A DNA stretch of 64,000 nt. Source: Lepidodermella squamata. Its lineage: Eukaryota > Animalia > Gastrotricha. The DNA lies in the NCBI GenBank assembly GCA_047495785.1, contig JBLDXI010000054.1:1054001-1118000 (forward strand), in the 5' to 3' direction. Below are positions 33,146 to 59,804 of the stretch, piece after piece (positions within the stretch are counted from its first letter, which is position 1; each line of letters opens with the position of its first letter). The notes beneath the pieces are model-generated. The model made no database searches, was not told the DNA's origin, and was given only the letters and a program-made list of their open reading frames with translations. The translations under genes and the position numbers were made by a program.

Positions 33146-35761
33146 ATGTTTCGAGTATTTATCTCTCTGATAGCAGCTAGTGCTGCACTAGCCAAAATAC
33201 CAATGTCAGCGCCACTGGAGCCAAGAATTTTCTCATCAACATACAATCCGAACGATACGAGTCGAAAAGTCATCAGCATAATGGCGTCATTCAATTATGG
33301 TGGCACTGTTCAACCTATGGGGCCCATTTGTACGGAGGGGATAAAACTTGTCCTTAATGGCGTGAAAAGAATGAACATGCTACCAGGCTATGAACTAGCT
33401 GTTGACTTTGTTGACGACCAGGTAGGCACGCTGACAATATAAAACTTTTTTCTATTGTTCGCTTCAGTTTTCCAGACCGATTGGAATCAGTAGAATGGTG
33501 ACCCAACTTCAGGTTAATGATTCAGTCTCAGATCGACTACCACTCACGGTGGGTCCATTCAGTTCTGCGAACATAAACACTGGTCAAATCTTTCAACACT
33601 TCAACTACATCGGAATTACGTTGGGGTCAACACAGAACGAGCCTGTCACCCAGCGATCGCGTTATAGCAACTTTTTCGTCACTCAAGGCCGACTTGGTAT
33701 ATGTTTCAGCAGCCTTCACAAGTTCCTTGACATGATGAGGTGGCAAAGATTGGCAATATTATCAGAGGGTAGCGACTACTTTGGGCAGATAGATGCCGAA
33801 TTCGTCCAGAATTTTGAGATGAACAATGGCTCGAAAGTTTTGGGAGTTTTCAAAATTCCCTACATTGTCGGATCTTTAGCTGAGGCTGAAAATATCGAAC
33901 AAGCAGTTTCAGACTTGAAAAAGCTGAATCCGAGGATCATCATTCTGAACGCAGCAGCAACAGCTCGAGCGGCTTGTTATCTACATCGATACAAGTTATT
34001 TGGACCGAATGTGGTCATCTTCACTCTGTTGAGCTCTGTTTTCGTGGCGAATGACCCTTCACGCTTTGATTGGTGTTCGGAGAGCATGTTGGAGGAGGTA
34101 CTTCAGAGTGTTATCTCTTTCGGTTGTTCTAACTTCATGAATTTGGGCATTGAAAATGACGTGGATTCCCTCGGAAACTCTGGGTCTGACCTAACAAATT
34201 GGATAACGTCCAGAATAGAAAGGCCTGAAGCTTCAACGATCTTCACTAATAGGCGACATTCGTGCTATGACGTCACCATGACGGGAGTTTTTGTGTTGAA
34301 CAGAACCGAGACTCTTCTTAACAGCAGTAAGTATGAACAAAATTTACCTCTGAATACCTTTGACACGTTTTCTTTCAGAGAATCAGACTCTCTCACAATG
34401 GGTAACTCGCGGGGATATGTTCAAAGAAAACGGAAGCTCGATTGTTGAAACCATGAAAGAAGCGCTATTCTCTGCCCGCTATAGAGTGAAAGCCGGGGAT
34501 ATCGCTTTTGAAAAGAGTACAACTTTGAACACGGGTGGCAATTCGATACAAGGCGTCATTCAATATAGAAGAGATCCCACGACAAACAAAGTCAAACAAA
34601 TCCCAATATGCGTCTACTACTCAAAGACTCAAGTTTTGAATTGCAGCCTCTCGCCAATAGTTTGGAGAACATCGAACGGGAAACCTCCTTCAGATACTAT
34701 TCACATAGAGAAAATAATTTCTCCGCTACTCGACCCTCCCGCCTACATAACAATCACGTTCTTCGCGGTGTTGTTACTCGCGACCAGTGTTTCCGTTTTC
34801 ATTTGGCATGAAAAAATGCGTCAGAAGAATGAAAGAATTTCAACATCCGCCCCCGAGCTTGGACGATTTATCATGCTTGGAAATATCCTACTTTTGACTT
34901 CCGTCCTGCTTCAACCCATGCTGTTTGATTCGAATTTCCAACCTCTGATGACTCTTGCAAATGGCGTGTTGTTTCTCGGCATAACCTGTTTAATGTTTGG
35001 CTTGGAAGGGAAGCTGGAACTGGCATATCTTGCCCTGAAGAATTACGCAACTATGAATCTGACAAATGATGATCGAGTGTCACGGAGAACAACATTCTCG
35101 TCAGTTAAGGCAGCAAAAAGGATTCCAGGATTCGGGCAATTAAAAATCGCTGTATGCTGTGTTGGAGCTCTTGCAATGACATTGTTTGCAATAATGCTGT
35201 TGGTGTGCTTCGTGGTATCGCCGCCTACTGTCGTAACGACAATAGATGAAGGCTTTGTCAATGATGCGGTAGAAATCGCGTTCGTGAACTATAGCCTAGC
35301 AATGAGAACCTCAGTTATGTCTCAATTTATCATTTCTGCGACCTGCTTGATCAATGGGGTTATCACTTTGAGAGGAAGCTTCCTTGCACATGCCCTCAGA
35401 ACAGTAAGTTTAAGTTTTCCTTGTTGAATATGAAATCTCTAAATCCTAACGATCATTGCAGAAAACGATTTCAAAGATAACCGATTTGAAAGCCACTTCA
35501 GCTTGCTTCTACGCGACGGTGATGCTGCTAGCTTGCGGAGGCATCATTGCGGGTGCAATTTTCGATGAAAGTTCCTATCAACGCATCACGTTGTCAGTTA
35601 TGATATTCGCGTGCATCACAATGAATCTGGGCATGCTTTTCTTTCCCAAAATGAGAAAAGCGAAACTTAGCGAAACATCATCGTCTAGCGCAGTAACAAC
35701 CTGGAACCAAGGCCATCGACAGATGAATGCTACATCTGCGATTATGTTCACCTCTACCTAA
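33146..35761 (+). CDS. GABA-B-like class C GPCR, subfamily II copy 1; exons 33146-33421, 33468-34326, 34379-35403, 35462-35761
   Basis: Three short GT-AG introns join four ORFs in frame. Venus-flytrap motifs (MLPGYELAVDFVDDQ, YSNFF, WQRLAIL, NPRIIIL), WRTSNGKPPSD linker, 7 TMs ending LFFPKM. Confidence 0.85.
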
Positions 35762-36102
35762 ACGTTTGTCTAGATAGCTGCCCCAATCGCGGCATTTCAA
35801 GTGGAACAGCTATAATCCTGTATTTCTCTCCCACCAGTCGAACTTACGTTTCAGAGCCGAGCACATTTTGAGTACAGTATACCCTCACTGATAGATGCTA
35901 AAAACTGAACGCTAATGAATAAAGAATAAAAGATTGAAATGAATCCAGATGAAACAGGTCTTCCTTATCATACTGGTATCAAGCAGGACTAACAAGTATT
36001 GCTGATAAGGATTAATGGGTTTTCAAGCGCGTTCTGGATTACCCCCAGAAGACAAAATGTGTCCACAGAAATGTGTCTGAGTGCTTTACATCTGGAATCT
36101 AT

Positions 36103-37494: not shown

Positions 37495-40114
37495 ATGTTT
37501 AGAGTATTTATCTCTCTGATAGCAGCTAGTGCTGCGCTAGCTAAAATACCAATGTCAGCGCCACTGGAGCCGAGAATTTTCTCATCAACATACAACCCGA
37601 TCGATACGAGTCGGAAAGTGATTAGTATAATGGCATCCTATAACTATGGGGGCACCGTGCAACCCCTTGGACCTATTTGCACTGAAGCGATCAAACTTGT
37701 TCTTGACAGTGCAAAAAGAATGAACATGTTACCTGGCTATGAACTGGCTGTTGACTTTGTTGATGACCAGGTAATCTTTCTGATACTTTAAAAATTACTT
37801 CAATCTCGGTATTAGTTTTCCAGACCAATCGGAATCAGTAGAATGGTGTCCCAGCTTCAGTTTAATGATTCTGTCTCAGATCGACTACCACTAACAGTTG
37901 GCCCTTTCAGTTCGGCGAGCATTAACACTGGTCAAATCTTTCAACACTTCAATTTCGTCGGAATCACTCTGGCTTCAACGCAGAATGAGCCTGTCACCCA
38001 GAGATCGCGTTATCGCAACTTTTTTGTAACTCAGGGTCAACTTGGTATTTGTTACAACAGCCTCAACAGGTTCCTCGACGCGATGAAATGGAAACGAGTG
38101 GCGATATTGTCTGAAGGCAGCGACTACTTCGGACAGATAGAAACGGAATTCATTTCAAATTTTGAGAAGAATAACGGCTCTAAGGTTACGGGAGTTTTTA
38201 AAATTCCAATAATTTCCGGCTCTTTAGCTGAGGCTGAAAATATCGAACAAGCAGTTTCGGACATGAAAAAGCTGAATCCGAGGATCATCATTTTGAACGC
38301 AGCAGCAACAACTCGAGTAGCTTGCTATTTACATCGATATAAGCTTTTCGGCCCAAATGTGGTCATTATCGCCCTGATAAACTCTGTCTTCGCGACAAAT
38401 GACCCTTCCCGTTTCACTGATTGGTGTACGGAGAGCATGCTGGAGGAGGTACTTCAGAGTGTGATTGCCTTCGGTTGCACTAGTCTGATGAATTTGGGTA
38501 TCGACAAGGATAAGGATTCCTTAGGAAATTCTGGGTCAGATCTAACAAATTGGATAACGTCAAGGGTAGAAAAGCCCGAGGCTTCACCAGTCTTCAACTC
38601 GAGGAGACATTCTTGCTATGACGTCACCATGACGGGATTGTTCGTTTTGAATAGAACTGAGACTCTCCTGAACCGCAGTAAGTATATAGTAGCGAAACTT
38701 AGCCCTGAATATTATAGTTCTTTTTCTATCAGAAAATCAAACTCTCTCACAATGGGTGACGAGTGGAGAGTTGTTTCAACGAAATGGAAACTCAATTGCT
38801 GAGACCATGAAGGAAGCACTGTTCTCGACCCGCTTGAGAGCAAACGTAGGCGATGTCGCTTTCGAAAGTAACACAACGTTGAACACGGGCGGCAGTGGGA
38901 TTCAAGGCATCATTCAATATAGAAGAGATCCCATTACAGATAAATTCAAACAATTCCCAATATGCGTCTACTTTACAAAGACTCAAGTTTTGAACTGCAG
39001 TCTATCGCCCCTGATTTGGAGAACCGCGAACGGGAAACCACCCTTAGACACTGTGCATGTTGTGAGAACAATTTCTCCGCTTCTCGATCTTCCCGTCTAC
39101 ATAACGATCACGTTCTTCGCGGTGTTGTTACTCGTGACTAGTGTTTCCGTTTTCATTTGGCATGAAACAATGCGCAAGAAGAATGAAAGAATATCAAAAT
39201 CCGCACCCGAATTAGGACGATTCGTTCTGGTTGGAAACATCCTACTCCTTATTTCTATCCTACTTCAACCCATGCTCTTCGATTTGAATTTCCAGTCTCT
39301 GATGACCCTCGCGAATGGAGCGATGTTTCTCGGCATAACCTGTCTGTTGTTTGGCCTGGAAGGGAAGCTAGAACTTGCGTACCTTGCCCTGAAAAAGGCT
39401 GCTCTAAGTCTGACAACAGAGGATGTAATTTCGCCGAGAACAATCTTTTCATCGGTAAGAGCAGCAAAAAAAATCCGCGGGTTTGGAAAATTAAAATTGG
39501 TTGTATGCTGCGTTGGAGCACTTGGATTAACATTGTTTACAATACTGGTATTAGTGATTTTCGCTGTATGGCCACCTCCGGTGGTGGCTACAACTGATGA
39601 AAACTTCATCGATGGCTCCCTTGAGTGGGTATTCGTAAACTATAGCCTAGCAATGGGATCCTCAGTAGTATCTCAATTCATCATTTCTGCGACTTGCTTG
39701 ATCAACGGGGTCATCATTTTGCGAGGAAGCTTCCTTGCGCATGCCCTCAGATCGGTAAGCTTCGCTTTTCTGTTCAAATCTATCAATCCTAAAAAATTGA
39801 ATTTATTATTGCAGAAAACGAATTCAAAAATAACCGATTTGAAAGCAACATCAGCGTGCTTCTATGGAACAGCGATGCTGATAGCTTGCGGAGGTATCAT
39901 TGCTGGTGCAATTTTCGATGAAAGTTCCTATCAACGCATCACGTTGTCAGTTATGATATTCGCGTGCATCACAATGAATCTGGGCATGATTTTCCTCCCC
40001 AAAATGAGGAAACCGCAATTGGGAGAGACACCATTGTCTAACTCGGTAGCATCATTGAACCAAGGCCATCGACGCATGTTTGCTACATCCACGGTTGTGT
40101 CAAGTTCTTCATAA
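37495..40114 (+). CDS. GABA-B-like class C GPCR, subfamily II copy 2 (4 exons)
   Basis: Paralogue of 33146-35761 with the same three intron positions. Confidence 0.85.
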
Positions 40115-40469
40115 ACGTTTGTGAAGACAGCCGCCCAAATTACGGAATTTCAAATGAATAAACTATACTGTATTTCTCGCTCATCACTTCGACATGTGTA
40201 TAAGCTGAACCTACCACTTCAACTTGCGAAACTGTATCTCTTACCAGTGATATCAAACTTGACCGCAGTTTTTTAGTAGGTGTGGACTTTGGACGTGCGG
40301 CCTCCTCCTCTCTTAATTGCCTCGTTTCTTTGTAACATGACCTAATGAATAATGACTGGAACCCCAAAATATCAGATAACCATATTAATTAGCGGAAGGA
40401 TTTGATAGTGAGTAAGTGAAAAATGATGAGCGATGGAAACAAATTGCATTCCAAAAACTAAGAAAACAC

Positions 40470-40805
40470 GCAATATAATCGCCTGCATCACAATGAATCT
40501 TTGCGTGCTTTACTTTTCAAAAAGCAGCAAAAATCAGGAAACAGCTGTTTCCGCAGAACGCATTGTCTAATGAAGTACCAACGTTCCACCAACGTACAAT
40601 TTTGTTTGGCTAGCTGCCCCAATGGCGGCATATCAAGTGGAGAAGCTTTAATCCCTAGTCCAACTCGTGTAACTGAACCCAGCACGTCAAAGCTTGCCTA
40701 AATTTTGAGTTCAACATAATCTGATTCTTCGAAGCTATCTAAAAACTGAAAGCTGTCAACAAACTGAACTGAAAGATTAACAAATCCAGATGAGAGAGGC
40801 TTTCA
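40470..40805 (+). pseudogene. Decayed fragment of a subfamily-II GPCR last exon plus 3' UTR
   Basis: GCCTGCATCACAATGAATCT, TAGCTGCCCCAATGGCGGCATATCAAGTGG and AATCCAGATGA match ~35610-35955 in order. Confidence 0.7.
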
Positions 40806-41687
40806 TCACGACAGTGGTCGGGGCATTCATCTATCTATTGAGCCATTTCTGATCGAAGTGACGTTTTCTGGAATTTCAAGCACGAGTGACGCTGTTTCCG
40901 CTAGGAAGCGGACCCGAATATGATGCCCTTTTCATGTAGTTTGACTAATATAAATATATTCATGAGATGGCTTTAGCCTATATGACGCTCTTAGTCACAC
41001 GCGAAAAATCCAGAAAAAAATGAGCAGTTAGCGTAAGTGTAAGATCTATCAAAACTCAAAACAAATGTCTTTTTTAATTTTTTAATGAATCTCATATTTT
41101 GATGTTATCTGAATGTTAATTAGCACCTCATTAATATTAATATCTTCACCTATTATAATTGCACGAGTCTGCACGAGTGACAATTGTTATTTTTAGCTGA
41201 CATAAACCCATGGATACAGCAGTTCAGTACTGAACTATGTCTATAGCTAAACCCAAAATTTGGATCTAAAAATAGTTCAGGCGCGTGCGAAATATTTTTT
41301 GTTTCAACTCGGCAAATTACTGAACGTGCGTAACTGCTGATCATCACTGTAAATGCCGGTTCACCGGTACACCAACATGGTCACTCAAATCGTGTCAAAT
41401 TGCCTTTATATCAAAGACTGCCGCCGAGTATAGCACGTGATTCGCTGCAAAAATAAGAGGCCAACGAGAAATCACCCCTAGATACTGTCGGATAATATGC
41501 TTAGATGTAGAAAATGTGTCCTCTCTTTTTAATTAGTTAGCTTTGAACAAAGAAGGTGGAAAACATGTCTTAGCGTTCTCAGCTACAGGATTTCACGGAA
41601 AGTGTTCAAATTTTATGCCAGTTATTCCTCCGAAAGAAAATAATTCATTCCTAGAATTTCGAATACTTTTAACGGCCTTCATCTAGT

Positions 41688-44006
41688 ATGCTAGCTATTT
41701 TAGCTTTTACCTGCCTGTTTCCCCACATGATGGCGGCAGAATCGGCCAAATTGCAGCTGCTTACCTTTGTTCCCTTCACTGGAAATGCGCCATTCGACGG
41801 GTCCATCTGCAAAGCAGCTATGCAAGTGGCAGTCGATGCCGCAAATTCTGACTTGGCTATTCTACCAGGCTTCCGCATCGAGCCCCTTTATCTAGACGAG
41901 GGCCTGTTGTCCCTGAACATTCCTAGAGTCACAGTACAGTTCTGGCGAGAGCCGATGCGGGATAACAATACATTCAAGGCCCCACTGGCTTTGGGAGCAC
42001 AATTCAGCCCAGGCTGTCAAAGGGGTGGTCCGATATTCCACCATCTTGGAATGGTTTTTGACGCTGTCGGTTGCCAAGGTAGTGACTTAATCGATCGGCG
42101 AGATCGCTACCCAAACGTTTATCGACAACGCGTTCCAGCTCAAAATTATATCGTCGCAAGGGTCGCTGCGATCAAGCGTTTCACGCCCTGGGTCAAGTTT
42201 GCTTCGATAACGTACGCAGACAATAATTTCGACGTCAGTAACGGTAGATTGTTCCTTGATACGGCTAGGTCAGCTGGATTCGACATCATCTGGTTCGATA
42301 CTGTGACTTCATTAACCGATGAAATGGTCGAATCTTTGAAGGAAAGCAACGCACGAATTATCGTTATTGATATCAGCGGGGCTGCAATGCTGACGGAATT
42401 CTTCTGTAAGATCCATAAATTTGGAATCAGAGGCCGGAGATATGTTTTCGTCTCTTTAATCAACGGAATTCTGGACATGAAACTTCCAACATGGACGATC
42501 GGCTTACCCCCGGGCTGCTCGAAAGAGATGCTACTTGACCAATACAGAAATTCAATGTGGTTTGGGAGTGTTCTCAGCCCTGATATGAATTACGGGCGAA
42601 CAGCCTTGGGCTATGATTTGACGGAATTCGAATCTCGGTTAGATCTTCTGACAAACAAGTCCCGAGTTCCCGATTATCGGTCAAGGTTCTACTGCCATGA
42701 TACTATGCTGGAATCAATTACGATCCTAGATAGGGCTGAGAAGCTTTTGAACCTCGAAAACATGTCTCTCAGCCATTTCGACGGTAGGCCAAGTTACGTA
42801 ATGGATGCCGTCAACAAAAGCGCAGCTACCGTCGATTATGTAACTCTGAGGACAGGTCGCAGTTTTATGTCCAAAAGAGTAGAGCCGGACAACGAGGCTC
42901 TTTTCATGGGTTACATGCCTTTGAATTCAATAGAATTGACAGGGCTATACAAAGTACGACCGTCTGTTGAGTATTCCTTCGAAAACTTCTCGGCTTATGT
43001 TTTTGACGGACCGAAGGTTTTCTCATGGCCCAACAATGGCCTGGCAAAAGACTCTTGGACTGAGGTTACGGTTGAAGTCACAGTCGGACAATCATACCGC
43101 TACGCTGTTTTTGGAACAACTGCTGTTGTAGCCGCGGCCAAGTCTTCGTTCGCTATAGGCTTCTTGAGAAAAAAGATGGAAAGCTTCATCTGGAGAATAG
43201 CCGGATTCTCGTCTTGTTTGTTCCTGGATACATCAGCTTTGATTTTTGTTCTCAGCTCCTCCGACACCGAACTCATAAATCTCTGCATTTTCAGGGTTAC
43301 AATGCTGGTTTTTGGACTAGCTACTATACACGGTTTGGTTATCGGGAAAAGTCTGTCCTTTTCAGCCATTTCTCAGGGCTCTAGAAGGAATACAACCAGA
43401 TCTGCTCTTCGCGTTAGCGGAAATGATGCAATGAATTTAAAAAGAACAAATCTGTCGACCGGAAGTGCATCATCAGGGCGCAGAAGTATGTCAAGGCCTG
43501 AAAAAAAGATTGGAAAAAGCTCGGTGTCGATCACTGCAGTATTTGTCCTGGCTAATTTGCTCGTGGTGTCCGCGTGGGTTGGCTCAAATCCAGCCGCGTT
43601 CAACTTCTCAAACGTTGCAATTTCTTCAACTTATGATGAAGTAAGCGATTTGAAGAGCCACAATTTCGGGTGGATCTGCACGGCTCATTATCAAATCGCA
43701 TGGATTCTGTCGATATGGGCACTGAACATAGCTGGATTACTCCTAACTGGCTTTAGGCTATTGGCAACTCATCGAAGTGCAGGTAAACAAGATGCGGGAA
43801 AGCTCAAGCTTTATGCTGTTTTGATCAACTGCTTGGTCACCCAGTTCGCTTCGATTCTTATCATCGTCCTTCTGAATGATTACTTCAAGCAAATGGCTTT
43901 CATTTCTTTTACGGCCCTCTTCATCTCAACTTCGACTTTTTTCATCGAAAACAGCGGTGAGCTAAAGCAGGCTTTCACCAGGTGTAGAGTTCATTTGCGC
44001 ATTTGA
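41688..44006 (+). CDS. GABA-B-like class C GPCR, subfamily I (intronless, 772 aa)
   Basis: Homologous to 11677-14217 (FVPFTGN.PFDGSICKA.MQVAVD; NKSRVPDYRSR.YCHD); 7 TMs. Confidence 0.87.
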   Translation: MLAILAFTCLFPHMMAAESAKLQLLTFVPFTGNAPFDGSICKAAMQVAVDAANSDLAILPGFRIEPLYLDEGLLSLNIPRVTVQFWREPMRDNNTFKAPLALGAQFSPGCQRGGPIFHHLGMVFDAVGCQGSDLIDRRDRYPNVYRQRVPAQNYIVARVAAIKRFTPWVKFASITYADNNFDVSNGRLFLDTARSAGFDIIWFDTVTSLTDEMVESLKESNARIIVIDISGAAMLTEFFCKIHKFGIRGRRYVFVSLINGILDMKLPTWTIGLPPGCSKEMLLDQYRNSMWFGSVLSPDMNYGRTALGYDLTEFESRLDLLTNKSRVPDYRSRFYCHDTMLESITILDRAEKLLNLENMSLSHFDGRPSYVMDAVNKSAATVDYVTLRTGRSFMSKRVEPDNEALFMGYMPLNSIELTGLYKVRPSVEYSFENFSAYVFDGPKVFSWPNNGLAKDSWTEVTVEVTVGQSYRYAVFGTTAVVAAAKSSFAIGFLRKKMESFIWRIAGFSSCLFLDTSALIFVLSSSDTELINLCIFRVTMLVFGLATIHGLVIGKSLSFSAISQGSRRNTTRSALRVSGNDAMNLKRTNLSTGSASSGRRSMSRPEKKIGKSSVSITAVFVLANLLVVSAWVGSNPAAFNFSNVAISSTYDEVSDLKSHNFGWICTAHYQIAWILSIWALNIAGLLLTGFRLLATHRSAGKQDAGKLKLYAVLINCLVTQFASILIIVLLNDYFKQMAFISFTALFISTSTFFIENSGELKQAFTRCRVHLRI

Positions 44007-46231: not shown

Positions 46232-48852
46232 ATGTTTCAAGTATTTTTCGCTTTTTGTTGTGTTAGCGCTGTGCTAGCCAAAATACCAATGTCAGCTCCA
46301 TTGGAGCCAAGAATTTTCTCAACAACATACAATCCGAACGATTCGAGTCGAAAAGTCATCAGTATAATGGCTTCCTATAACTACGGCGGTACCGTTCAAC
46401 CTATGGGGCCCATTTGTACCGAGGGGATCAGATTAGTCCTCGACAGCATGAAAAGAATGAACATGTTACCTGGCTACGAACTGGCTGTTGACTTGGTTGA
46501 TGACCAGGTAGGCGTGTTGACAATTCAAAAGGTGTTCCCAATTTTTCTCATTGGTCCCATTAGTTTTCCAGACCAATAGGAGTTAGTAAAATTGTGTCTC
46601 AGCTTCAGTTTAATGATTCTGTCTCTGATCGACTGCCGCTGACAGTTGGCCCGTTCAATTCGGCAAATATCAACACTGGGCAAATCTTCAAACACTTCAA
46701 TTACATCGGAATTACGTTGGGGTCAACGCAGAACGAACCTGTCACCGAGCGATCGCGTTATAGCAACTTTTTTGTCACTCAAAGTCGACTTGCCATTTGC
46801 TTTGACAGCCTCTACAAGTTCCTCGACGTGATGAAATGGCAACGAGTAGCTTTATTATCTGAAGGCAGTGACTACTTTGGACAGATAGACACCGAGTTAG
46901 TCCGGAATTTTGAGATGAAAAATGGCTCAAAAGTGCTAGGGGTTTTTAAAATTCCCTACGTTGTCGGTTCTTTAGCTGAGGCTGAAAATATCGAACAAGC
47001 AGTTTCAGACTTGAAAAATTTGAATCCAAGAATAATAATTCTAAATGCAGCAGCCACAACTCGAGCGGCATGTTATCTACATCGATACAAGTTATTTGGA
47101 CCGAATGTGGTCATCTTCACTCTGTTGAGTTCTGTTTTCGTGGCGAATGACCCTTCACGCTTCAATTGGTGTTCGGAGAGCATGCTGGAGGAAGTTCTGC
47201 AGAGTGTGATTGCCTTCGGTTGTTCTAACTTGATGAATTTGGGCATTGACGACGATGTAGATTCCTTTGGAAACACTGGGTCCGATCTAACAAATTGGAT
47301 AACGTCCAGAATAGAAAGGCCTGAAGCTTCACCTATCTTCAATGTTAGGAGACATTCTTGCTACGACATCACCATGACGGGAGTCTTTGTTTTGAATAGA
47401 ACCGAGACCCTTCTTAACATCAGTAATTTTTAACACAATATAGCACTGAAAACCTATACCAGTCTCTTTTACTTGTAGAAAACCAGACCCTTTCTCAATG
47501 GGTGACTCGTGGTGATTTGTTCAAACAAAATGGAATCTCGATTGCTGACACAATGAAGGAAGCGCTCTTCTCGACCCGCTTGAGATTGAAAGCTGGGGAT
47601 GTGGCTTTTGAAAAGAACACAACGTTGAATACCGGTGGCGATTTGATACATGGCATCGTTCAGTATAGAAGAGATCCCTTGACAAACAAGCTCAAACAAG
47701 TTCCAGTATGCGTTTACTACTCAAAGATTCAAGTCATGAATTGCAGTCTCTCGTCTATGGTTTGGAAAACGTCGAACGGAAAACCCCCTTCTGATACTGT
47801 GCACATAGAGACAATAATTGATCCGCTTCTCGACCTCCCCGCCTACGTAACAATCACGTTTTTCGCGGTGTTGTTACTCGCGACTTGCGTGTCCGTTTTC
47901 ATATGGTATGAGAAAATGCGCAAGAGGAATAAAAGAATCGCAACATCTGTCCCTCAGCTCGGACGATTCATCATGGTTGGAAATAAATTACTCCTGATTT
48001 CTATCCTGCTTCAACCCATGCTCTTCGATTCGAATTTCCAGTCTCTGATGACCCTCGCGAATGGAGCGATGTTTCTAGGCATAACCTGTCTAATGTTTGG
48101 CCTGGAAGGAAAGCTGGAACTTGCGTATCTTGCCCTGAAAAGAGCTGCTCTGAATGTAACGATTGATGCTCTAGTTTCGCGGAGAACAATTTTTTCGTCA
48201 GTTAGGGCTGCTAAAAGGCTCCAAGGGTTTGCGAAAATGAAGTTTGCTGTATGCTGTGTTGGAGCACTTGCTTTGGCATTGTTTGCAATATTGTTGTTGG
48301 TGTGCTTCGTGGTATCGCCACCGCCTGTTGTGGCTATAACTGGTGAAAGCTTCATCGATAGTTCCGTTGAATTTGTACCCGTAAAATACAGCTTAGCTAT
48401 GGAATCATCAGCCATGTCTCAAGTTATCGTTGCCGCGACTTGCTTGATCAACGGGATCATCATTTTAAGAGGAAGCTTTCTTGCACATGCTCTAAGATCG
48501 GTACGTTGTTTTGTTCCTATTCTCACAATTTTTGTAATGTTTCTTATTTCAGAAAACGATTTCAATGATAACCGATTTGAAAGCTACAGCAGCTTGCTTC
48601 TACGCGACGGTGATGATGCTAGCTTGCGGAGGCATAATTGCTGGTGCGATTTTTCATGAAAGTTCCTATCAACGCATCACATTGTCAGTTATGATATTCG
48701 CCTGTATTGCAATTAATTTCGGCATGCTTTTCTTCCCGAAAATGAGAAAGCCGGAGTTGGTGGGGACACCAATGTCTAGCGGAGCACCTAGCTTGAAACA
48801 AGACCATCGAAGGATAGATAATACATCTGCGATCATGGTCAGCTCTTCGTAA
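46232..48852 (+). CDS. GABA-B-like class C GPCR, subfamily II copy 3 (4 exons)
   Basis: Paralogue of copies 1 and 2 with the same intron positions. Confidence 0.85.
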
Positions 48853-50010
48853 TCTCTTGTCTACACTCTAGAAAGCTGCGAGTTGGGCGGCATATCAAGT
48901 CCTGTATTTCTCTCAAATACGTAATACGTCTGACTTGTACCTTTCGTACCTTAGTAAAATATCACCTCATTCATATATTCCGAAAGTGGTTTTTTTCATC
49001 GAATTTGAGACCAGAAAAGTTCCAATCCCAGCCGATCACGTTCTACATTGAGATCTGAACGTATGATGTAATACTAAAAATGCATAGAAATATCGAAACC
49101 AATAAAATATGAACACGAACGATACACTTATTTCGGGGAACCGATCCTGTCCTATCCTAATATCCTAATGCAGGAAACGGAGCGATCGAGAAACAAAAGG
49201 ACAAAGGGCAAAGGAGAAAGCCATTCTGCTCACGAATTTTATCTCGCTTTGGTATGAGCATTGACCCCAATCTGAATATTCACACTGAGCTGTCCGAATT
49301 TAGGATCAATGTGGATCACCAGTTTTCCTTCTATACCTGAACAGGACAAATTATTTGTTTACCGGAGTTGATGCTAGACTATGCAGTTTTTCATAGCGCA
49401 TCTTTTGAAATAAAGCGACTAAACATAGTGCCCACAGACAATTTTCTGAGACTGCTAGACAACCAGAAACATCTGGACAAAAAATATTAATTTAACAACT
49501 TTTCAAGCTTCCGGCGAAGAGAGAGTTGCATGCTCCAGACAGCGAAGCCAAGATCGAGTCATATGCAATTTGAATTTGAAATGGACAGCAGCAAAGCGAC
49601 TTGACAATGTTACGGTCAGTAAGCTGATTCTTTAAAAGCGGTCCTCATTTTTTAAATCGATTTTTCAGCGGCCCATATCGGCACGAAACTGATGAACGGA
49701 GGTGAACGGCTATTTGACACATGAAGGAAGATGAACTTTTTTGATACAAGGTGAACGAACGTGAACAAGCAAACGATTTTTTCTTGCTACGTGAACAGAG
49801 GTGAAAAAACGTGGGCAGCAGTCAGAAGGAGATGAACTATGGTGAACGTTACTTGGAGAGCTGATAAAACTTAATTTTGGCGGGAAATGAAATCCAATGT
49901 AGTTGAAGATCATTGCATTTCGGCAAAGTTATCAATTTTGCGTTGGTATACCACGGTATAACGCAAACCTTAGCTAACTACGGATTACAGGTTGTTTGAG
50001 CGCATTACGA

Positions 50011-50670
50011 ATGGTCTCCTATGATGTTTCTAGTTGTCTGGAGGACAACATGTCAATCAGCGATTTTTTCTGGAACTTGGAACACGGATTCTTCGTGGAA
50101 TTTGACCAAATGAGACTACGTGAAATTTTCTTGATGCATCCTGAAAAAGTCGACGCTAGTTATCTGCGGCCGGATTCGCCTGGTTTTCTACGGATTGCGT
50201 ACATTTTTGTCGACGAAAATGAGGAGGAAGATGAAAACTGGCCAAGTATTGTTCTGTCCATTATAACAGCGGCCGGCGAAGCAGCGGGTAAAGCGGCTGT
50301 AAACGAGCGTCACGCGCTTACTTTCGGCTTGAAAGAAATGTTACGCTCGAACGGGCCCTATGCCATTGCGATTCTTGAATTCTTTGTCAAAAGGCTACTT
50401 CAATCCGGTTCTCGACTGAAAATATCATCTCTGGACAATGCGCTAGGTGGTGAGATTTTGTCTAGCTCAAGGTTCAAATCACTGATGCCTGAAATTCTAA
50501 GCGAGTTTGACGATTCAATCTTAAAACGCCCAATTTTCACGCTAATGTCTTTGGCTCGACGTGCTGTATTGATTCGACTGAGACTTGGCTTGATGAGGCG
50601 CAATGAAGATATCGCGAGTTTATGCCTACCTGACAGCCTTAAAAACTATCTCCATTTCGACGATTTGTAG
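50011..50670 (+). CDS. SOCS-box protein carried inside the transposon (start uncertain)
   Basis: C-terminus FTLMSLARRAVL...DIASLCLPDSLKNYLHF matches the BC-box plus cullin-box SOCS pattern; AATAAA downstream. Confidence 0.72.
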   Translation: MVSYDVSSCLEDNMSISDFFWNLEHGFFVEFDQMRLREIFLMHPEKVDASYLRPDSPGFLRIAYIFVDENEEEDENWPSIVLSIITAAGEAAGKAAVNERHALTFGLKEMLRSNGPYAIAILEFFVKRLLQSGSRLKISSLDNALGGEILSSSRFKSLMPEILSEFDDSILKRPIFTLMSLARRAVLIRLRLGLMRRNEDIASLCLPDSLKNYLHFDDL

Positions 50671-51034
50671 CTGGTTGTTGTATTATACTGTTACAACGCA
50701 CGCTTATGTGTCGAGTGAAAAAGGAATAAAAAGGCGGAAAAGTACTCATATATTTCTTTTTTAATTCAAAAGTTGAGCCTCTTCATAATCTAGTCAGTTA
50801 TAACAGCAGCGTTACACGGAAATATTAACATCATCGCATTAATAACGCTTGGTTATACTCTATTTTCAGCACATACAAATTGAAAAAAATTTCCGAGCTT
50901 GAAATAAAAAAATCTCAGAAAATTTTCCAAAGATGATAGTTATTGTAGCTATGAAACAGCAGATGCAACTACAGCTCGAAAAACACACAAGTCAAATAGC
51001 ATCAATGTAGTAGTAAGAAACGTTGTACTAAGAG

Positions 51035-53906
51035 CTATGAGGCGATTTCAGTTACATTTGTTATTTTAGAGAGAAAAATGTCGCCACTAGCCTTGCTTTT
51101 GAAAACACAGCAAGGAGCAGTAATGGAATCGTAAAGGTGGAAGGTCATGCTAGCGCCGATCTCGGTGACGACTTTGTGATGACCGCGGCTTGAATTCGGC
51201 CATAGGTTTCGCACGCTTAACAATCGCAGGCCCACCCATAACTTGGAGCCATCTTTTAAAAAAATGGAGCAGACGCCGTATCCAAACTCGCCGAAAACGG
51301 CAGTCCCAGACTCGATAGTATCTCCACCAGTCAACAGGCCAAATGGGGTGAGACATTTTCTATAAAGCTTGGGAAGATCATCCGGTAGAATCGATAGATT
51401 ACTCGTTTTCGAGATGTTATAGCGTTCGGTGATGGTAAGCTTAACGTCAACTGCAGCCCAGATGTAAACAGATTCCCCAGCTGTTTCGCCCGATTTATGC
51501 AGTGGTCTCGCCTCCAGCGACTTGTAGAAGCGAGAGGCGACCTCGGCGTCCTGAAAGCGGTAAGAGCCATGTCGCAAAGCCTCCTCGATGAGTGCCCGCT
51601 TCGCGATCTGATCGAGAGGGTGATTTGGGCCGGTGACGAATCGAGCTAAACGGCCGTAAAAACTCTCTAGCCCGAATTCGTCATACTCTGATAGGATACC
51701 ATGCCTGGCCAGGAAAAGGCCAAAGTGTCTAGTTTGATGGATGGCATATGACAACAGCCGTTGGCCAAACAGCTGCCCAAAGCGCACGACGAAGTTATCA
51801 AAACTTCTGCCAAGCTCTTCCGGGGTTCGACCTAGGAAACATAAATATAATTATTTGTCAAGCCTAAATTATTAAACTCTGAAATTTACCATCAAAATTT
51901 GGTACGAGGGATGAATGAACGATGTCGCAGAGCTCGATGATAAGAGTGCCGTAGGTTTCCAGCCACTCGTCATCGACATCAGGGGCTCCTTGACGGAAGA
52001 AAATAGGCGCCAGGTGGAGAAGGAAAAAGCGATACTCGTTCGCTTTTAATTTCCGGCTCTCAGCAATGCTCTCACGACCTCGAGTTTGATAGAACGACGG
52101 AACACTAACCGTTTCAATATCATCCTCAATTTTTTGAAATGCGGTGTCCGAGCAGAGCTGAGCAGCCGAGCCTGGTGCGATGATTCTTTCACAAATAACA
52201 CGTATCACACCGAGGCACAATCCGTGTAGGTAGCCGGGGGCGGTATCTTCAATGATATCGTAGAAGAGCAGGCGAAACAGTGGGCTCAAGTTGTAGGTAC
52301 CCTCCGTTTCATCATTGTCTTTGAATGTTCCTCCGGATTCGTCGAAAAGCTGCTTAGCTAGTAGCGCTGCCAGTTTTTCAGACTCGTGAGTTCGAAGGTG
52401 TAAGGGGCTCGGAGCTTCACCCTCTTCCGGAAAAATGACAGTACTATCGTCCAGTCGCTTTTTCTTCTTCTTATTGGCAGCGTTTTCCTCGTCTTCATTG
52501 TCTGCATTTTCTTCCTCATCATCAGCTTCATTACCTTCGCCAATTTTAGACTCGGCATAGGCCTGTCTCGATAATCCGCGAGTCCTGCAGTAAGCACAGC
52601 AATAGTGTCCTCCCGACTTGCGGCACATGGCGTGCGCTTTTGCCGGCAAGTCCATCACACCAATGACTCCTTTCGGCGCCACAACCTAAATCAGGCACAT
52701 TAAATTTTGTTATTAAAATGTTTTTAGTTCCTAACCTTGATTTCAGTGCCACAAGGTAATGTAAGCCCATTAGAAATAACTTCATTCATCTCGGTGATAA
52801 ACTCGCTGAAAGTATCTTCAGGATCGGGATAACCGTCACCGGACCAAATGTTAACCAGGAAACGAAGGCGTGTACCCCGAACACCGAGAACCAGCATCCA
52901 TAGGTTTGTAAGCTCGTACTCCGTCATAGCCAAAGTAAAATGCGATTTTCTTACTGCTATTCTTGTACTTAACGGAAGTCAGCGCAGAAATAAGACGATC
53001 TTTGAATGGAAGATTGATCATTAAGCCATTTCCAGCTTTCGACACTGTAAGCGTTTTTTCGAGCTCAATGTTGACTAGGCGGTGTACATAACGCTGCAAA
53101 GTTCGTACTGAGCCTATACCTTGAAACAAGTTGGGCTTAGGTAGCAACACGGCTTGATCCTGAATTCCGCTCAAAATTGACTTCCATGATAATCTGCCAG
53201 TAACGGCGGTTGCAAGACATAACATGAGACCATCTCCTAAAGTAGACTCGCTGCCACCATACAGCGGCTGTTTCAACTTATCGCGCCAGAAGTCATCTGG
53301 TAAATAATTATCGTGTTCCTCGTCGCTATTTCCGCCTTCTTCTTCTTCAGATTGAGAATTTCTTGAGGGGCTTGTCGAGAACTCTTCTTCGATCGAAGAG
53401 CTATCAGATGGTAATCGATCAGCATCTATAGGCTCGAAAGTGCTAGTATCTTGGGGATGAGGATGTGAAAGGACACTTTGAACCCCCGAAGTTAGTTGAG
53501 TCATTTGCTCACCATCCGAGTCGGCGCCAGCCTTCTGAGAAGTTGAATCAATATTCTCAGCCGACGAATTAGAGTCGATATTCTCAGATGATGAATTAGA
53601 GTCAGTAGTTTCAGATGATGAATTAGAGTCGGTAGTTTCAGAAGACGATTCAGAGTCTGATTGTTGAGAAGACAATATCGGAAGTTCTTTAGATGAACTG
53701 CCAGCGATTATAACACGATTGGAAGCTGTATTCACTGTCGAACTAGCACCCGCAAGAAACCCCGCTGCAGGTCGAATTTCATGCATAACCTTATGCGTAT
53801 CGCGCCGTCGTTGCTTGTCAGATGGTTCTTCGCGAGATTCAACTTGTTCAGGAGCTCTCGGCTCACCAGCTTTACGAAGTGGAACGAATCCTTTGCGCTT
53901 TCCCAT
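51035..53906 (-). pseudogene. CACTA/EnSpm transposase, 3 exons, with an apparent frameshift near 52905
   Basis: Motifs FGYDGV, LW...IWSG..YP, MDLPAKA..GHYCCAYC, YLHGLCLGV, KANEYRFFL, AIHQTRH..HG.L...FGLESFYG, HPLDQI; introns ~52735-52686 and 51889-51832. The DGV and LWM motifs are in different frames. Confidence 0.85.
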
Positions 53907-54512
53907 TCATATATAATTAATGATAACTATAGAAATAAAAAATCCACCTTAAATGTACGTGGTGATTCTGGAAAACACTTTCTCTTGCGGCAGAGAATGG
54001 CAGAAAGTTTGGATGACGATTTAACAGTAACAATAGTAACAGGATGTTGGATGAAAAATAAAACCCAAGTCGAAGCTATTGTATCTTCTACCCTATGTGA
54101 CGTAACGAGTCGCGTGCCGGGATGCCGGAAGCGTGGCGGCGCGGAAAATAACGTTGCTATGAGTTTTATTTTTCACATTTCAATTTAAAATTATCAATAA
54201 TCAATATTAAAAACTTGATTTTAGATTATTACAGTAATTATAATTTTTTCCCGCTCTTTTTTAAGCACAATGTTTTTTGCGAGCACGCGTGCACTTTTCA
54301 GTTTTTTTTGCGAGCACGTGCGCTTTGCTTTAAAATGGTAGCCGATTCATGAAAAACGGTTAGTTTTTTGTTTTTTTTGCTATTCTTTCTTTTTGCCCTT
54401 CCTTATGCTCGACACTGCGCCATTTGCAATCTTACCAGTACTGTAATTTTTTATTTCCATTTAGGTCCACTGCTGGTTTTAGAGTTATTGTCATCGAACT
54501 GCTGCCGTAAAC

Positions 54513-56106
54513 ATGGGCAAGAAATCGGAACCTTACTCTCGCGAGCCTCACGCCGTCATCAAATGGCTGCAAAAAACTGTCGATGGCAATACAATGATCG
54601 GCTACGTTCCCTGTTCAAATCTAATCATGCAACCGGGCACGACCACTTCAGACTTGGTTGCGAACGAAACAAAGCTGGCGGCTGTGTTCAGGCATCAGAT
54701 TCACGACGCTCTTTTCATTGAAATGTGCAAGAACGAGAAGATTGCAAAGGAATACGTGGAAAAGCTGGCAATCGAAATGCAAGTAGCAGCAGAAGCAGCA
54801 GCAGCGGCGGCTGCGGCGGACAAAGAAAATGGCAATTTAGAAATCGGCTCGAAAGTCAGCAAGGACAAGAAGAACAAGAGTGAAACTATGGAGGAGAAGG
54901 GCAGCAAGGAAAAGAAGGATACGAAGACGAAGGTTACGACATTGGAAGAAAGCGAGAGTGCTGTGGATCAATCCAAAGCGAAGAAGGCAAGGATCACGCC
55001 AGAAGCTAGCGAGCCTGCGGTCGAGAAGTGTTTCGTTCAAGCTGCAGGCACTAATTCCGAGTTCGGTCAAGGAAGTGATGTGGTCGATAGCTCTCTGGAT
55101 CAAGCCACCACAACAGCCCATTCAGAACTGGTTCCACGAAGACATGATTCTAGTTCACTGGCCCCTTTGCCTATGCTTCCAGATGATTCGATGCTGATGT
55201 TCAATGACCCAGCCTTTTCTCAACTACCTAGCGACGGCCAGCCTGGCATCATAACGATGGTCAAAGCAGATGTGATTCTGTCGATGGCAGTGAAAGTGGA
55301 TGAATTGTACATGGTTACCTTTTCTGATGTCCGCAAGCTTATGGTTTGTTCATCTCATTTGTATTATATTTTTTCAATGTCATTTCTGTCTTAAAGCTCT
55401 TTGATTACATTATGCTGCTTCTTTTTTTCCAGGTTGCTGGGGTAGTCCCGCCAAGCGCCGAGTTGCTGGAAACATGCGACGACATCATGTTCTCAAAGGA
55501 AAATGGCAACAAATACGCAGCTCGTAAATTGATGCTCGAAATGGTTATTGATAACAATTCGCATGACGACTTGATGAGCAAGACCCTAACTGGCAAGCAA
55601 AAGAATGGCAACGTCGATGCTGCGAAGGCGCTGGACCGTACGAAATGGGCGGCGATCATCAGTAAGTTGTCTTGACCCTTCATCCGTGCAGTTTCATAAT
55701 TTTTTCTCCTCGTAGATTATGTTCTATCGAGGTATAGGATTGTAGATGGCTTCAAATATCTACAAAAGAAGGCGATGCATTTTTTGAAGTACTACCGGTC
55801 GAAGTATGCAGGTGAGCTATTTCGGCTTCATTGTAATGCCTAATGCTTAATATTTTGTTATTCATAGGAGGAGTACCAGCGCGTAAAGATCTTTCCGCCA
55901 CAATTGACAAGTCTGCCCAGATCGAAGATTTCCATTTATCCAAGAAGCGCGCGACCCCGGCGACCCCGGCGACCCCGGCGACCTCGGCGACCTCGGCGAC
56001 CCCGGCGACCCCGGCGACCTCGGCGACCTCGGCGACCCCGGTGACCCCGAAACCAGCTACCGCGGACGCCGGTGACGTGAGCGATTCCGACGATTCTGAT
56101 CTGTGA
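54513..56106 (+). CDS. Transposon accessory gene, BEN-domain-like (about 4 exons)
   Basis: AARKLMLEMV...DDLMSKTLTGK...KALDRTKWAAII resembles the BEN consensus; short GT-AG introns link ORFs 54513, 55346 and 55843. Confidence 0.6.
55951..56049 (+). repeat. Coding 9-bp minisatellite GCGACCYCG x11 (ATP/ATS repeats)
   Basis: Directly visible tandem array. Confidence 0.95.
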
Positions 56107-57413
56107 CTTGTTATTTTGATTGCGATTATACTCTCTCGAGTTCTCTTGTTTCTTTCGTTTGCAGATGTGAGCGATTTCGATGATTATTCTGATTTGTGAA
56201 TTGTTATTTTGATTGTGATTATACTCTCTCGACTTAGTCGTTATTTCCATCACCTGCTCGGACGCCGATATGTGCGATTCTCCGACCATTCTGACTTGTT
56301 GTGATATACTCTCTAGAGCTCGACTTCGATATCATTCGTTTTTTCATGAGCAGTTAATGTACTCCTCTTTTCAACTTTTTCATTGAACCATTTCATTTCA
56401 ATTATACTCGCGTCTCTTGTCAAGTAGATTGAAGATTGAGTCTCTCGTTATTCTTGTGCCTAAGTATGTGCCAAATCAAGTAAAAAGTAGTCATAATAAG
56501 AACGACGTCTTTTTATTAGTAAAAGTACGTGAACGAATAACAGCTGAACGCACATGAACCAGCTAGCTGAACAGAGGTGAACCAGGCAGCTGAACGTAGG
56601 TGAACCAAACAGCTGAACTGAGGTGACTAACGACGGTTTGACACCTCAGTTCATCTCTTTAACTTGTTCAGCTTACTTCAGCAAAACGGTGCCGATATGG
56701 GGGGGAGAAGTTCATTCCTGCTGTTGGCTCTGCTGTTACAATTTTTATCCTAGATTCACACCGGTGCCACTATGCCTCTGAGGGTTTAATGCTTCATGCA
56801 GACTATCGGAAGGATTTACAGCAATTCACGACATCGTAGGATTAGAATTTATTAAGGAATATTACATTTTGAGGAGTTTACTAGTTGGAGACGTCTGAGT
56901 GAGCAAATGAAACCTTCTTTCTTCTTCCGCTCCCTACGCTAGCACGCACGATTTGGAGAACATTTCGTTCAAAATTCAACTCGAATCGATTGAATTCGGA
57001 AGAATGCAGAAACAGTCGGCTAAACACCGCGAAATTGACCTTCATTTCTGTTTTACGATGCCGTGTGACATAGACATCGAATGCCTGCTCACATGTGCCA
57101 GCATGGCCACTCGAATCATGTCAAATTGCCTATTTTCAACGTCTGCTGCTAAGGGCAGTGCGTGATTCTCCGCACAAAGTGAAAGACTAGTGAGAAATCG
57201 CCCTCAAAAAAAAGTCAGATATGGTTGGATATAGCAAATTTGCACTCTCCTCTTAATTAGCTAACTTTGACCAAAAAAGTTGGAAAACATTTCTCAGATC
57301 AATTTAAGATTCAAGGTATTCTCCAACTCTATCATTCAAGGTTTTTTGCCTTTTTCCTCGAATTAATAATTCATTCCTAGGAAATCGTACACTGTTAGTA
57401 ACCTTCAATTAGG

Positions 57414-59804
57414 ATGCTGCCTATTTTAGCTTTCATCTCCGTGTTTCCCAATTTGATTGTGGGAAAATCGGCGAAATTACAGCTGCTTTCCTACATTCCC
57501 TTCACCGGAAATGCGCCATTCGATGGGTCCATCTGCAAAGCAGCTATGCAAGTGGCAATCGATGCCGTCAATTCTGATTCGGCTATTCTACCAGGCTTTC
57601 GCATCGAACCCCTTTATCTAGACGAAGGCCCGTTGTCCTTAAACATTCCTAGACTCACGATCCAATTCTTGCGAGAGCCAATGAGGGATAACAATACATT
57701 CAAGGCCCCAGTGGCGTTGGGATCATATTTCAGCCCAGGTTGTCAGAAGGCTGGTCCGATTTTCCACCATCTTGGAATGGTTTTCGACGCTATCGGCTGC
57801 CAAGCTAGTGATCTGATCAATCGAAGAGATCGCTACCCAAACGTTTACCGACAACGCGTTCCAGCACAAAATATTATCTTCGCAAGAGTGGCAGCGATCA
57901 AGCGTTTCACGCCCTGGGTCAAGTTTGCTTCGATAACGTACGCAGACAACAATTTTGACATCAGTAACGCTCGTTTGTTTCTTGATACGGCCAAATCGGC
58001 TGGATTCAACATCATCTGGTTCGATGCTGTGACTTCGATAACCGATGATATGGTCGCATCTTTGAAGGAAAGCAATGCTCGGATCATCGTAATTGATATC
58101 AGTGGAGCTGCAATGTTAACGACCTTCTTCTGTCAGACCCATCAATTTGGAATCAGCGGCCGGAGATATGTTTTCGTCGCGTTAATCAACGGAATTCTAG
58201 ACATGACCCTTACAACATCCACCGACAGCTTACCCTCGGGCTGTTCGAAAGAGATGCTACTTGACCAATACAGAAATTCAATGTGGTTTGGGAGTGTTCT
58301 TAGCCCTGATAGGAATTACAGGAAAACAGCCTTGGGCTATGATTTGCCGGAATTCGAATCTCGGTTAGATCTTTTGACAAACAAGTCCCGAGTTCCCGAT
58401 TATCGGTCAAGGTTCTACTGCCATGATACTATGCTGGAATCAATTACGATCTTAGATAGGGCTGAGAAGCTTTTGAACCTCGAAAACATGTCTCTCAGCC
58501 ATTTCGACGGTAGGCCAAGTTACGTAATGGATGCCGTCAACAAAAGCGCAGCTACCGTCGATTATGTAACTCTAAGGACAGGGCGAAGTCTCAGGTCGAA
58601 AAGAGGAGAATCGGACTACGAGGCTCTCTTCATGGGTTACATGCCTCTGAATTCTCTAGAATTGACAGGGCTATACAAAGTGCGACCATCTGTTGAGCAT
58701 TCAGTCGATAACTACTCGGTCTATGTTTTCGACGGACCGAAGATTTTCTCATGGCCTAACAATGGCCTGGCTAAAGACTTCTGGACTGAGGTTACGGTAG
58801 AAGTCACAGTCGGACAATCTTATCGCTACGCTGTTTTTGCAACAACTGCTGTTGTAGCCGTGGCTAAATCGTCGCTCGCGATAGGCTTCTTGAGACCAAA
58901 TATGGACAACTTCATTTGGAGATTGGCCGGATCCTCGGCTTGTTTGTGCCTAGATATTTCGGCTATTATTTTCGTTCTTAGCTCCTCCGACACCGGACTC
59001 ATAAATCTCTGCATTTTCAGGGTGATAATGCTGGTTTTTGGGCTGGCTACAATACACGGTTTGGTTGTTGGAAAAAGTCTGCTAACGGCTGCCATTTCGC
59101 AGGGTTCCAGAAGGAATACTAACAGATCCCCTTATCGTGTTAGAGGAAGGACCCAAACAAACGTTTCGATCGGCACTGCTTCAGGACGTGAACATCCGAC
59201 TATTTTTAATATTGATCGCAGAAGAGCGGAGACAAGACCTGAAAAGAAGAGTGCAAAAAGCTCGGCATCGATCACCGCAGTATTTGTCCTGGCTAATTTG
59301 CTCATTGTGTCCGCGTGGGTTGGCTCAGATGCAGCTGCATTCGATTTTTCGAAGGTTGCAATTTCTTCAACTTATGATGAAGTAAGTGATTTGAAGAGCT
59401 ACAATTTCGGTTGGATTTGCACGGCTCATTATCAAATCGAATGGATTCTTTCGATATGGGGATTGAATATAGCTGGATTGCTACTAGCTGGTTACAGGCT
59501 CTTGGAAACTTATCGAAGTCAAGGTAAGCAAGATGCGGGAAAGCTCAAGCTTTATGCTGTTTTGATCAACTGCTTGGTCACCCAGTTCGCCTCTATTCTT
59601 ATCATCGTCCTTCTGAATGATTACTTCAAGCAAATGGCTTTCATTTCTTTTACGGCCCTCTTCATCTCAACTTCGACTTTTTTCATCGAAAACAGCGGTG
59701 AGCTAAAGCAGGCTTTCACTGGGTGTAGAGTTCGCTCACGCAATAACACTGTGGATTTGACGATATCAGATTACAGCAGTGGCGATACTTCAGCGGTTTT
59801 TTAA
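57414..59804 (+). CDS. GABA-B-like class C GPCR, subfamily I (intronless, 796 aa)
   Basis: Close paralogue of 41688-44006, including about 350 bp of upstream homology. Confidence 0.87.
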   Translation: MLPILAFISVFPNLIVGKSAKLQLLSYIPFTGNAPFDGSICKAAMQVAIDAVNSDSAILPGFRIEPLYLDEGPLSLNIPRLTIQFLREPMRDNNTFKAPVALGSYFSPGCQKAGPIFHHLGMVFDAIGCQASDLINRRDRYPNVYRQRVPAQNIIFARVAAIKRFTPWVKFASITYADNNFDISNARLFLDTAKSAGFNIIWFDAVTSITDDMVASLKESNARIIVIDISGAAMLTTFFCQTHQFGISGRRYVFVALINGILDMTLTTSTDSLPSGCSKEMLLDQYRNSMWFGSVLSPDRNYRKTALGYDLPEFESRLDLLTNKSRVPDYRSRFYCHDTMLESITILDRAEKLLNLENMSLSHFDGRPSYVMDAVNKSAATVDYVTLRTGRSLRSKRGESDYEALFMGYMPLNSLELTGLYKVRPSVEHSVDNYSVYVFDGPKIFSWPNNGLAKDFWTEVTVEVTVGQSYRYAVFATTAVVAVAKSSLAIGFLRPNMDNFIWRLAGSSACLCLDISAIIFVLSSSDTGLINLCIFRVIMLVFGLATIHGLVVGKSLLTAAISQGSRRNTNRSPYRVRGRTQTNVSIGTASGREHPTIFNIDRRRAETRPEKKSAKSSASITAVFVLANLLIVSAWVGSDAAAFDFSKVAISSTYDEVSDLKSYNFGWICTAHYQIEWILSIWGLNIAGLLLAGYRLLETYRSQGKQDAGKLKLYAVLINCLVTQFASILIIVLLNDYFKQMAFISFTALFISTSTFFIENSGELKQAFTGCRVRSRNNTVDLTISDYSSGDTSAVF

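Follow-up and report, generated by a model that had tools for sequence, protein, structure and literature searches.

How did an intact gene for a SOCS-box protein come to lie inside an animal DNA transposon, and is it there as more than a passenger? The question is raised by a 7-kb element at positions 49672-56701 of a stretch of 64,000 nucleotides from the gastrotrich Lepidodermella squamata (contig JBLDXI010000054.1, positions 1,054,001 to 1,118,000; hereafter the window, to whose first base positions refer unless a contig is named). An original prediction, made from the letters of this stretch, had described a CACTA/EnSpm transposon with a transposase, a BEN-like gene and an open reading frame (ORF) ending in a SOCS-box pattern. 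On balance, we favour a history in which a SOCS-box gene of a host family was recently captured and is carried as a passenger by a young transposon of the CACTA-Mirage-Chapaev-Transib (CMCT) clade. The transposon would have taken up a member of the host's SOCS-box repertoire, with the passenger gene in the space that separates the left end from the transposase's 3' end, and would now be spreading it as cargo.

Boundaries and copies of the element

The region 49672-56701 is a real, bounded, multi-copy DNA transposon of the cut-and-paste type. It is delimited by a perfect 13-bp inverted repeat (CCCATATCGGCAC) whose complementarity extends to 36 nt at 72%, and its termini read CCCAT...ATGGG; no further exact copy of the 13-mer was found within the 64-kb window. 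Just inside the ends, the motif TGAAC (mostly as GTGAAC, CTGAAC or ATGAAC) occurs 8 times in the left 200 nt and 10 times in the right 200 nt, compared with 2.4 per kb window-wide, and the two TGAAC-richest 200-nt stretches of the entire window are the two ends of the element. As in En/Spm, such subterminal repeats would be binding sites for an element-encoded protein. The dinucleotide GG adjoins both ends and forms a candidate 2-bp target site duplication (TSD), an agreement expected by chance in 1 of 16 cases and weak when taken alone. Two other sites were considered and rejected as ends: a terminal-repeat-like match with two mismatches at 43707, which was judged a chance match because it lies inside a receptor coding region, and a TGAAC cluster at 41222. 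An Rfam search gave no match inside the element.

Other copies were sought among Logan contigs of a public sequencing run (run X1), which were placed on positions 49300-55299; the run holds 96% of the element's sampled words. A single contig of 6279 nt covers 49694-55299, starting 22 nt inside the left terminus and passing through the SOCS-box ORF and the transposase into the second gene; it differs from the window at five bases and by an insertion of 14 bases. In two further contigs the match begins at 49672 and runs inward, and the sequence before this position is different, indicating that the left boundary lies exactly at 49672 and that other copies with other flanks exist. The window's own left flank was found joined to the terminus in a separate contig of 343 nt. 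Word depth was 136.7 for the internal contig and 78.7 for the junction contig; depth is not a copy number, and the higher internal value agrees with the presence of more than one copy. Taken together, the inverted repeats, the TGAAC clusters and the run X1 contigs bear out the predicted 7-kb element with terminal repeats, within which three genes are present; the predicted TSD comes down to a dinucleotide shared on both sides, at odds of 1 in 16 by chance.

The copies sampled in run X1 amount to a handful and are nearly identical, at ~0.1% difference (5 bases in 5.6 kb), and no further contig was found at a likeness of at least 85% over 50100-52100. Because the window copy and the run X1 contig differ at only 5 bases in 5.6 kb, the element is very young, and it is low in copy number. 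The subterminal repeats were also matched by short, more distant pieces in the same run. Within the window, the element is flanked on either side by a class-C receptor-like gene with an ANF_receptor domain (Pfam), and the two genes stand in tandem. When the element is subtracted, the spacer between these genes is ~1240 nt long and sister receptor genes elsewhere in the window are spaced ~1280 nt apart, lengths that fit a 7-kb insertion between receptor genes.

The SOCS-box gene and its family

The ORF at 50011-50670 encodes 219 residues from its first ATG and, as predicted, is intact and lies inside the termini. It has its own upstream space, and an AATAAA signal follows ~55 nt after the stop codon. 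The predicted SOCS box was confirmed by a profile search: Pfam SOCS_box (PF07525) matched at 25.5 bits (E 1.5e-5), above the curated cut-off of 23.5 bits, with residues 176-214 aligned to profile positions 3-38 of 39.

Relatives of this protein are few. An exhaustive search of 1.84 billion representative proteins returned one true relative, P0001 (E 1e-8), which is 31% identical to the element protein over 180 residues, the N-terminal part included. On a 2.2-kb Logan contig (L001) of run SRR23086389, its gene follows a second family member 90 nt further downstream and in the same orientation. The two tandem genes on L001, at contig positions 521-1099 and 1192-1890, were the only relatives found in public protein collections, which suggests a family restricted to a lineage that has been poorly sampled. 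A search with the three-member family alignment retrieved the two L001 proteins alone, a word-indexed protein search with the ORF gave no match, metagenome scans with the family were blank, and exact-sequence look-ups of the window proteins found none on record. One additional hit, P0002 (469 aa, internally repeated), matched over 28 residues only and was treated as spurious.

BC boxes follow the consensus (A/P/S/T)-L-x3-(C/S/A)-x3-(A/I/L/V). The BC box of the element protein, T-L-M-S-L-A-R-R-A-V, fits this canonical pattern, which is also kept in P0001 and P0003. In the Cul5-like box, L-C-L-P-D-S-L-K-N-Y-L, the first proline of the L-P-phi-P...Y-L pattern is replaced, and the homologue P0001 has L-P-I-P...Y-L. 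The family profile also aligned the element's SOCS box cleanly with that of human ASB8 in a PDB search (E 0.11). Judging from these motifs, the protein, if made, would serve as a substrate receptor by docking on Elongin B/C and a Cullin.

The family is thus real and its architecture conserved, and because the homology with P0001 includes the N-terminal part, the first 175 residues are not unique to the transposon. The original prediction had seen in them a possible novel domain; they are instead common to a homologue that stands in tandem with a paralogue, and they lean weakly towards ankyrin-SOCS proteins. AlphaFold, run with three sequences, produced an all-helical model of low confidence (predicted local distance difference test, pLDDT, 55.6), for which the best Foldseek matches were ASB9 and ASB8, not significant (E 0.06, template modelling score, TM, 0.29). 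The Foldseek and Atlas matches, to ASB, HEAT and armadillo repeats, were not significant throughout, and those of Atlas lay below TM 0.45. Language-model features of residues 1-175 alone placed small SOCS-box proteins and ASB17 as the nearest clusters (0.88-0.90), which we treat as a lead only. ASB proteins resemble the element protein in having a small N-terminal part of helical-repeat type followed by a C-terminal SOCS box, and ASB8, ASB9 and ASB17 are its nearest named matches. However, ASB proteins have ankyrin repeats, whereas the Pfam Ank profile did not match the element protein and its structural matches were not significant.

The arrangement on L001 bears on where the cargo came from. 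Because the only homologue adjoins a second family member, a tandem layout of the kind found among host genes, we favour a host-family origin for the gene in the transposon. The opposite direction of descent, with the SOCS-box gene original to the transposon lineage and the chromosomal tandem genes derived from it by domestication or fragment amplification, appears improbable. The near-absence of the family from public data (2 relatives among 1.8 billion representatives) would fit a fast-evolving selfish or conflict-driven family; however, the two L001 members follow each other head to tail at a distance of 90 nt, their 2.2-kb contig contains no transposase, and SOCS-box proteins are ancient host genes of animals. 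GC content at third codon positions (GC3) does not set the cargo apart from either element genes or host genes.

Transposase, second gene and classification

On the minus strand, a DDE transposase of ~921 residues was modelled from three exons (53906-51035) with GT..AG introns. The frame is open throughout except for a frameshift at 52904/52905, where the run X1 contig holds 14 more bases and the frame stays open. These 14 extra bases indicate that the family has an intact transposase, and that the window copy has either lost them by deletion or lacks them through an assembly slip. The N-terminal part of the protein contains a Ser/Thr/Asp/Glu-rich repeat, encoded by a 27-nt tandem repeat at 53539-53673 (about five units in four overlapping copies).

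Reading the spliced model by eye, with no profile, we identified candidate catalytic and zinc-binding residues D328, D403, C421-x2-C424, H688-x3-H692 and E712. A signature of D, D, C(2)C, H(3)H and E is shared by EnSpm, Mirage, Chapaev, Transib and RAG1, a clade that produces duplications of 2-5 bp and has mostly CA..TG termini (PMC12730594). Consistent with this, the language-model features of exon 2 were nearest to Transposase_21, Plavaka and RAG1_ZnC2 (zinc motif) clusters; those of exon 3 were nearest to unnamed rotifer and arthropod clusters and DUF6830. The element is placed in the CMCT clade on these motifs and features, a class assignment that is provisional in so far as the motifs were read by eye. 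A metagenome scan with exon 2 was blank, and an AlphaFold model of exon 2 alone had no usable fold (pLDDT 39.7). Separately, a run X1 contig of 1642 nt matches 52103-52447 alone (~86% identity) and is unlike the element on both sides, which points to a possible second, related transposase family in the genome.

Several features are shared with CACTA/EnSpm elements in particular: a short TSD in the 2-5 bp range (here the GG candidate), clustered subterminal repeats in both orientations, and, next to the transposase, a further gene encoded by the element, comparable to the pair TnpA and TnpD. Others differ. CACTA/EnSpm termini read CACTA/G, CAC..GTG or CA..TG, in contrast to CCCAT...ATGGG here; neither Transposase_21 nor any other profile matched this transposase, and the flanks share GG alone. 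The CACTA/EnSpm label given by the original prediction can thus be kept in the wider sense of the CMCT clade, by virtue of C(2)C and H(3)H. The element lacks CACTA termini, a 3-bp TSD and a match to the Transposase_21 profile.

The second gene is transcribed divergently from the transposase and encodes 454-464 residues. Its product begins with a small N-terminal domain, followed by a long low-complexity middle rich in Lys, Glu and Ala, a helical region of ~100 residues, an (A-T-P/S) repeat and an acidic tail. The helical region spans the second and third exons and resembles a BEN domain to the eye only: the BEN profile (PF10523) had no Pfam match on the exon pieces, into which an intron containing a stop divides the candidate domain, and a PDB search with the exon at 55433-55660 returned designed ankyrin repeats alone (E 0.003). 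The prediction of a divergent plus-strand gene therefore holds, and its BEN label found no support from Pfam or PDB. From its position and by analogy with TnpA of En/Spm, we infer that the second gene is a candidate DNA-binding helper acting on the TGAAC repeats. At the end of this gene, a tandem duplication (56074-56142 and 56164-56235; period ~90-93 nt, 86-92% identity) takes in the final codons and the beginning of the 3' untranslated region. The coordinates of all features are collected in the table.

Table. Features of the transposon at 49672-56701 and its immediate flanks, in window coordinates
Feature	Position	Strand	Basis or remark
GG, candidate 2-bp TSD, left flank	49670-49671		same dinucleotide after right terminus; chance 1 in 16
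Left terminal inverted repeat, CCCATATCGGCAC	49672-49684	+	two run X1 contigs enter unlike sequence exactly before 49672
Left subterminal region, 8 TGAAC	49685-49871	+	40 per kb vs 2.4 per kb in window
Single-exon gene for 219-aa SOCS-box protein (helical N-terminal part, C-terminal SOCS box)	50011-50670	+	Pfam, translation, homologues, model
SOCS box, residues 176-214	50536-50652	+	Pfam PF07525; aligns with ASB8 SOCS box
Transposase exon 3: H(3)H (IHQTRH), E of FGLESF 20 residues after it, C-terminal part	51035-51831	-	spliced model
Transposase exon 2: second D (MDLPAK), followed at 18-21 residues by C(2)C	51890-52685	-	spliced model, language-model features
Transposase exon 1 (acidic/Ser-rich N-terminus, first D in YFGYDG)	52736-53906	-	spliced model; frameshift 52904/52905
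Second element gene, four exons: 54513-55313 (or -55343), 55433-55661, 55716-55811, 55868-56106	54513-56106	+	open through all exons
9-nt tandem repeat coding (A-T-P/S) run, tail of second gene	55951-56049	+	repeat family D1
Right subterminal region, 10 TGAAC/GTTCA	56520-56688	+	motif count
Right terminal inverted repeat	56689-56701	-	inverted-repeat match to left end
GG, right flank	56702-56703		same dinucleotide as left flank

A number of observations weigh against the history that we favour, a host gene captured by a young CMCT-clade transposon. The host-family capture is drawn from one foreign contig, L001. Regarding the clade, the transposase exons had no Pfam match even at E 10, its pieces had none in NCBIfam or PDB, and two protein or contig searches returned no sequence relatives. 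Regarding the insertion, the flanks read CGG and GGG and have GG alone in common, so that a 3-bp TSD is absent, and in an empty-site comparison with a paralogous receptor spacer the sequences did not align and the lengths alone agreed. Finally, two run X1 contigs join 49839 to 50005 and 49853 to 50002, skipping 150-165 nt upstream of the SOCS-box ORF; these joints are variants of the element or of a relative.

Such joints, near 49840-50005, would also fit the reading that the region is not one element at all, with a host SOCS-box gene brought between a transposon end and a transposase by nested or adjacent insertions, or by an assembly join. A candidate TSD of 2 bp only and the broken transposase of this copy could be read in the same way. 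We regard such a composite as very improbable, as the 6.3-kb contig comes from an independent assembly of run X1 and runs from just inside the left terminus into the second gene with five base differences and a 14-base insertion, and word depth is greater in this contig than in the junction contig, as would be the case were the entire stretch repeated (depth, again, not being a copy number).

Cargo retention, precedents and genomic setting

A further question is whether the transposon keeps the SOCS-box gene because it profits from it. Under this explanation, selection would retain a protein that recruits Elongin B/C and a Cullin for the ubiquitination either of a host factor responsible for silencing or restricting the element or, as a brake, of the transposase itself. 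The element has several copies and encloses the ORF between its termini, where the ORF has upstream space of its own and an AATAAA ~55 nt past the stop; its BC box is canonical; and its whole architecture is conserved with a homologue of 31% identity, hence the protein family is functional. However, the copies are ~99.9% identical, and because of this an open SOCS-box frame gives no signal of selection. The single copy difference inside the ORF, at 50321, changes an amino acid, and among the run X1 contigs of at least 85% likeness no diverged copy of the ORF body was seen. We therefore consider retention by selection possible but unlikely. Its broader form, in which a transposon-encoded Cullin-RING receptor is kept against a controlling host factor or to tune the transposase as one case of a wider use of ubiquitin-system genes as cargo, strikes us as distinctly doubtful.

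Capture of genes by DNA transposons is known already, and so are CMCT or KDZ elements with an accessory gene of host type: fungal transposons of both groups carry TET/JBP dioxygenase genes (PMC12730594). These fungal elements resemble the one described here in belonging to the same broad clade and in carrying an extra host-type gene able to act on host control, and their cargo family is strongly expanded in the same genomes (PMC12730594). They differ in that the fungal cargo is a DNA-modifying enzyme, whereas here a predicted substrate receptor of a ubiquitin ligase is found in an animal-like host, with near-identical copies only. Best exemplified by the fungal TET/JBP elements, transposons with host-type genes able to act on host control are rare and informative about the conflict between element and host; an animal DNA transposon with a complete gene for a ubiquitin-ligase adaptor would add a concrete and testable case.

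Host genes are also captured by Pack-MULEs, plant CACTA elements and Helitrons, usually as fragments or chimeras in non-autonomous elements. In these captures, as here, host coding sequence lies between the ends of a DNA transposon and is copied along with it. In contrast, the element described here contains a complete single-exon gene with all family-invariant residues and also a transposase. A different parallel is offered by viruses: HIV Vif and adenovirus E4orf6 hijack Cullin-RING ligases through BC or SOCS-like boxes and have proven substrates. There too a selfish element encodes a BC-box protein, which in the present case would plug into Elongin B/C-Cullin; unlike those viral proteins with their proven substrates, the SOCS-box protein is known here from its gene alone. 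If the cargo were retained for its function, it would be a DNA-transposon counterpart of these viral ligase hijackers. Even a mere passenger would illustrate one route by which members of a fast-expanding SOCS-box family can be spread through a genome. A full-text literature search found no paper linking the SOCS box with transposon cargo, in agreement with the earlier remark that no standard description of such cargo in CACTA elements is known.

The receptor-like genes that flank the element belong to a tandem class-C family with members at 47502-48659 and 57414-59804 and paralogous stretches near 35619-35772, 39972-41774 and 43500-43800. They combine an ANF_receptor ligand-binding region with a multi-pass membrane part, and some consist of very long uninterrupted ORFs. 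To the left of the element, a short repeat at 49300-49420 has a word depth of 1562 in run X1, and several small contigs break off at 49416/49417; this is either an unrelated repeat of high copy number or a piece resembling a miniature inverted-repeat transposable element.

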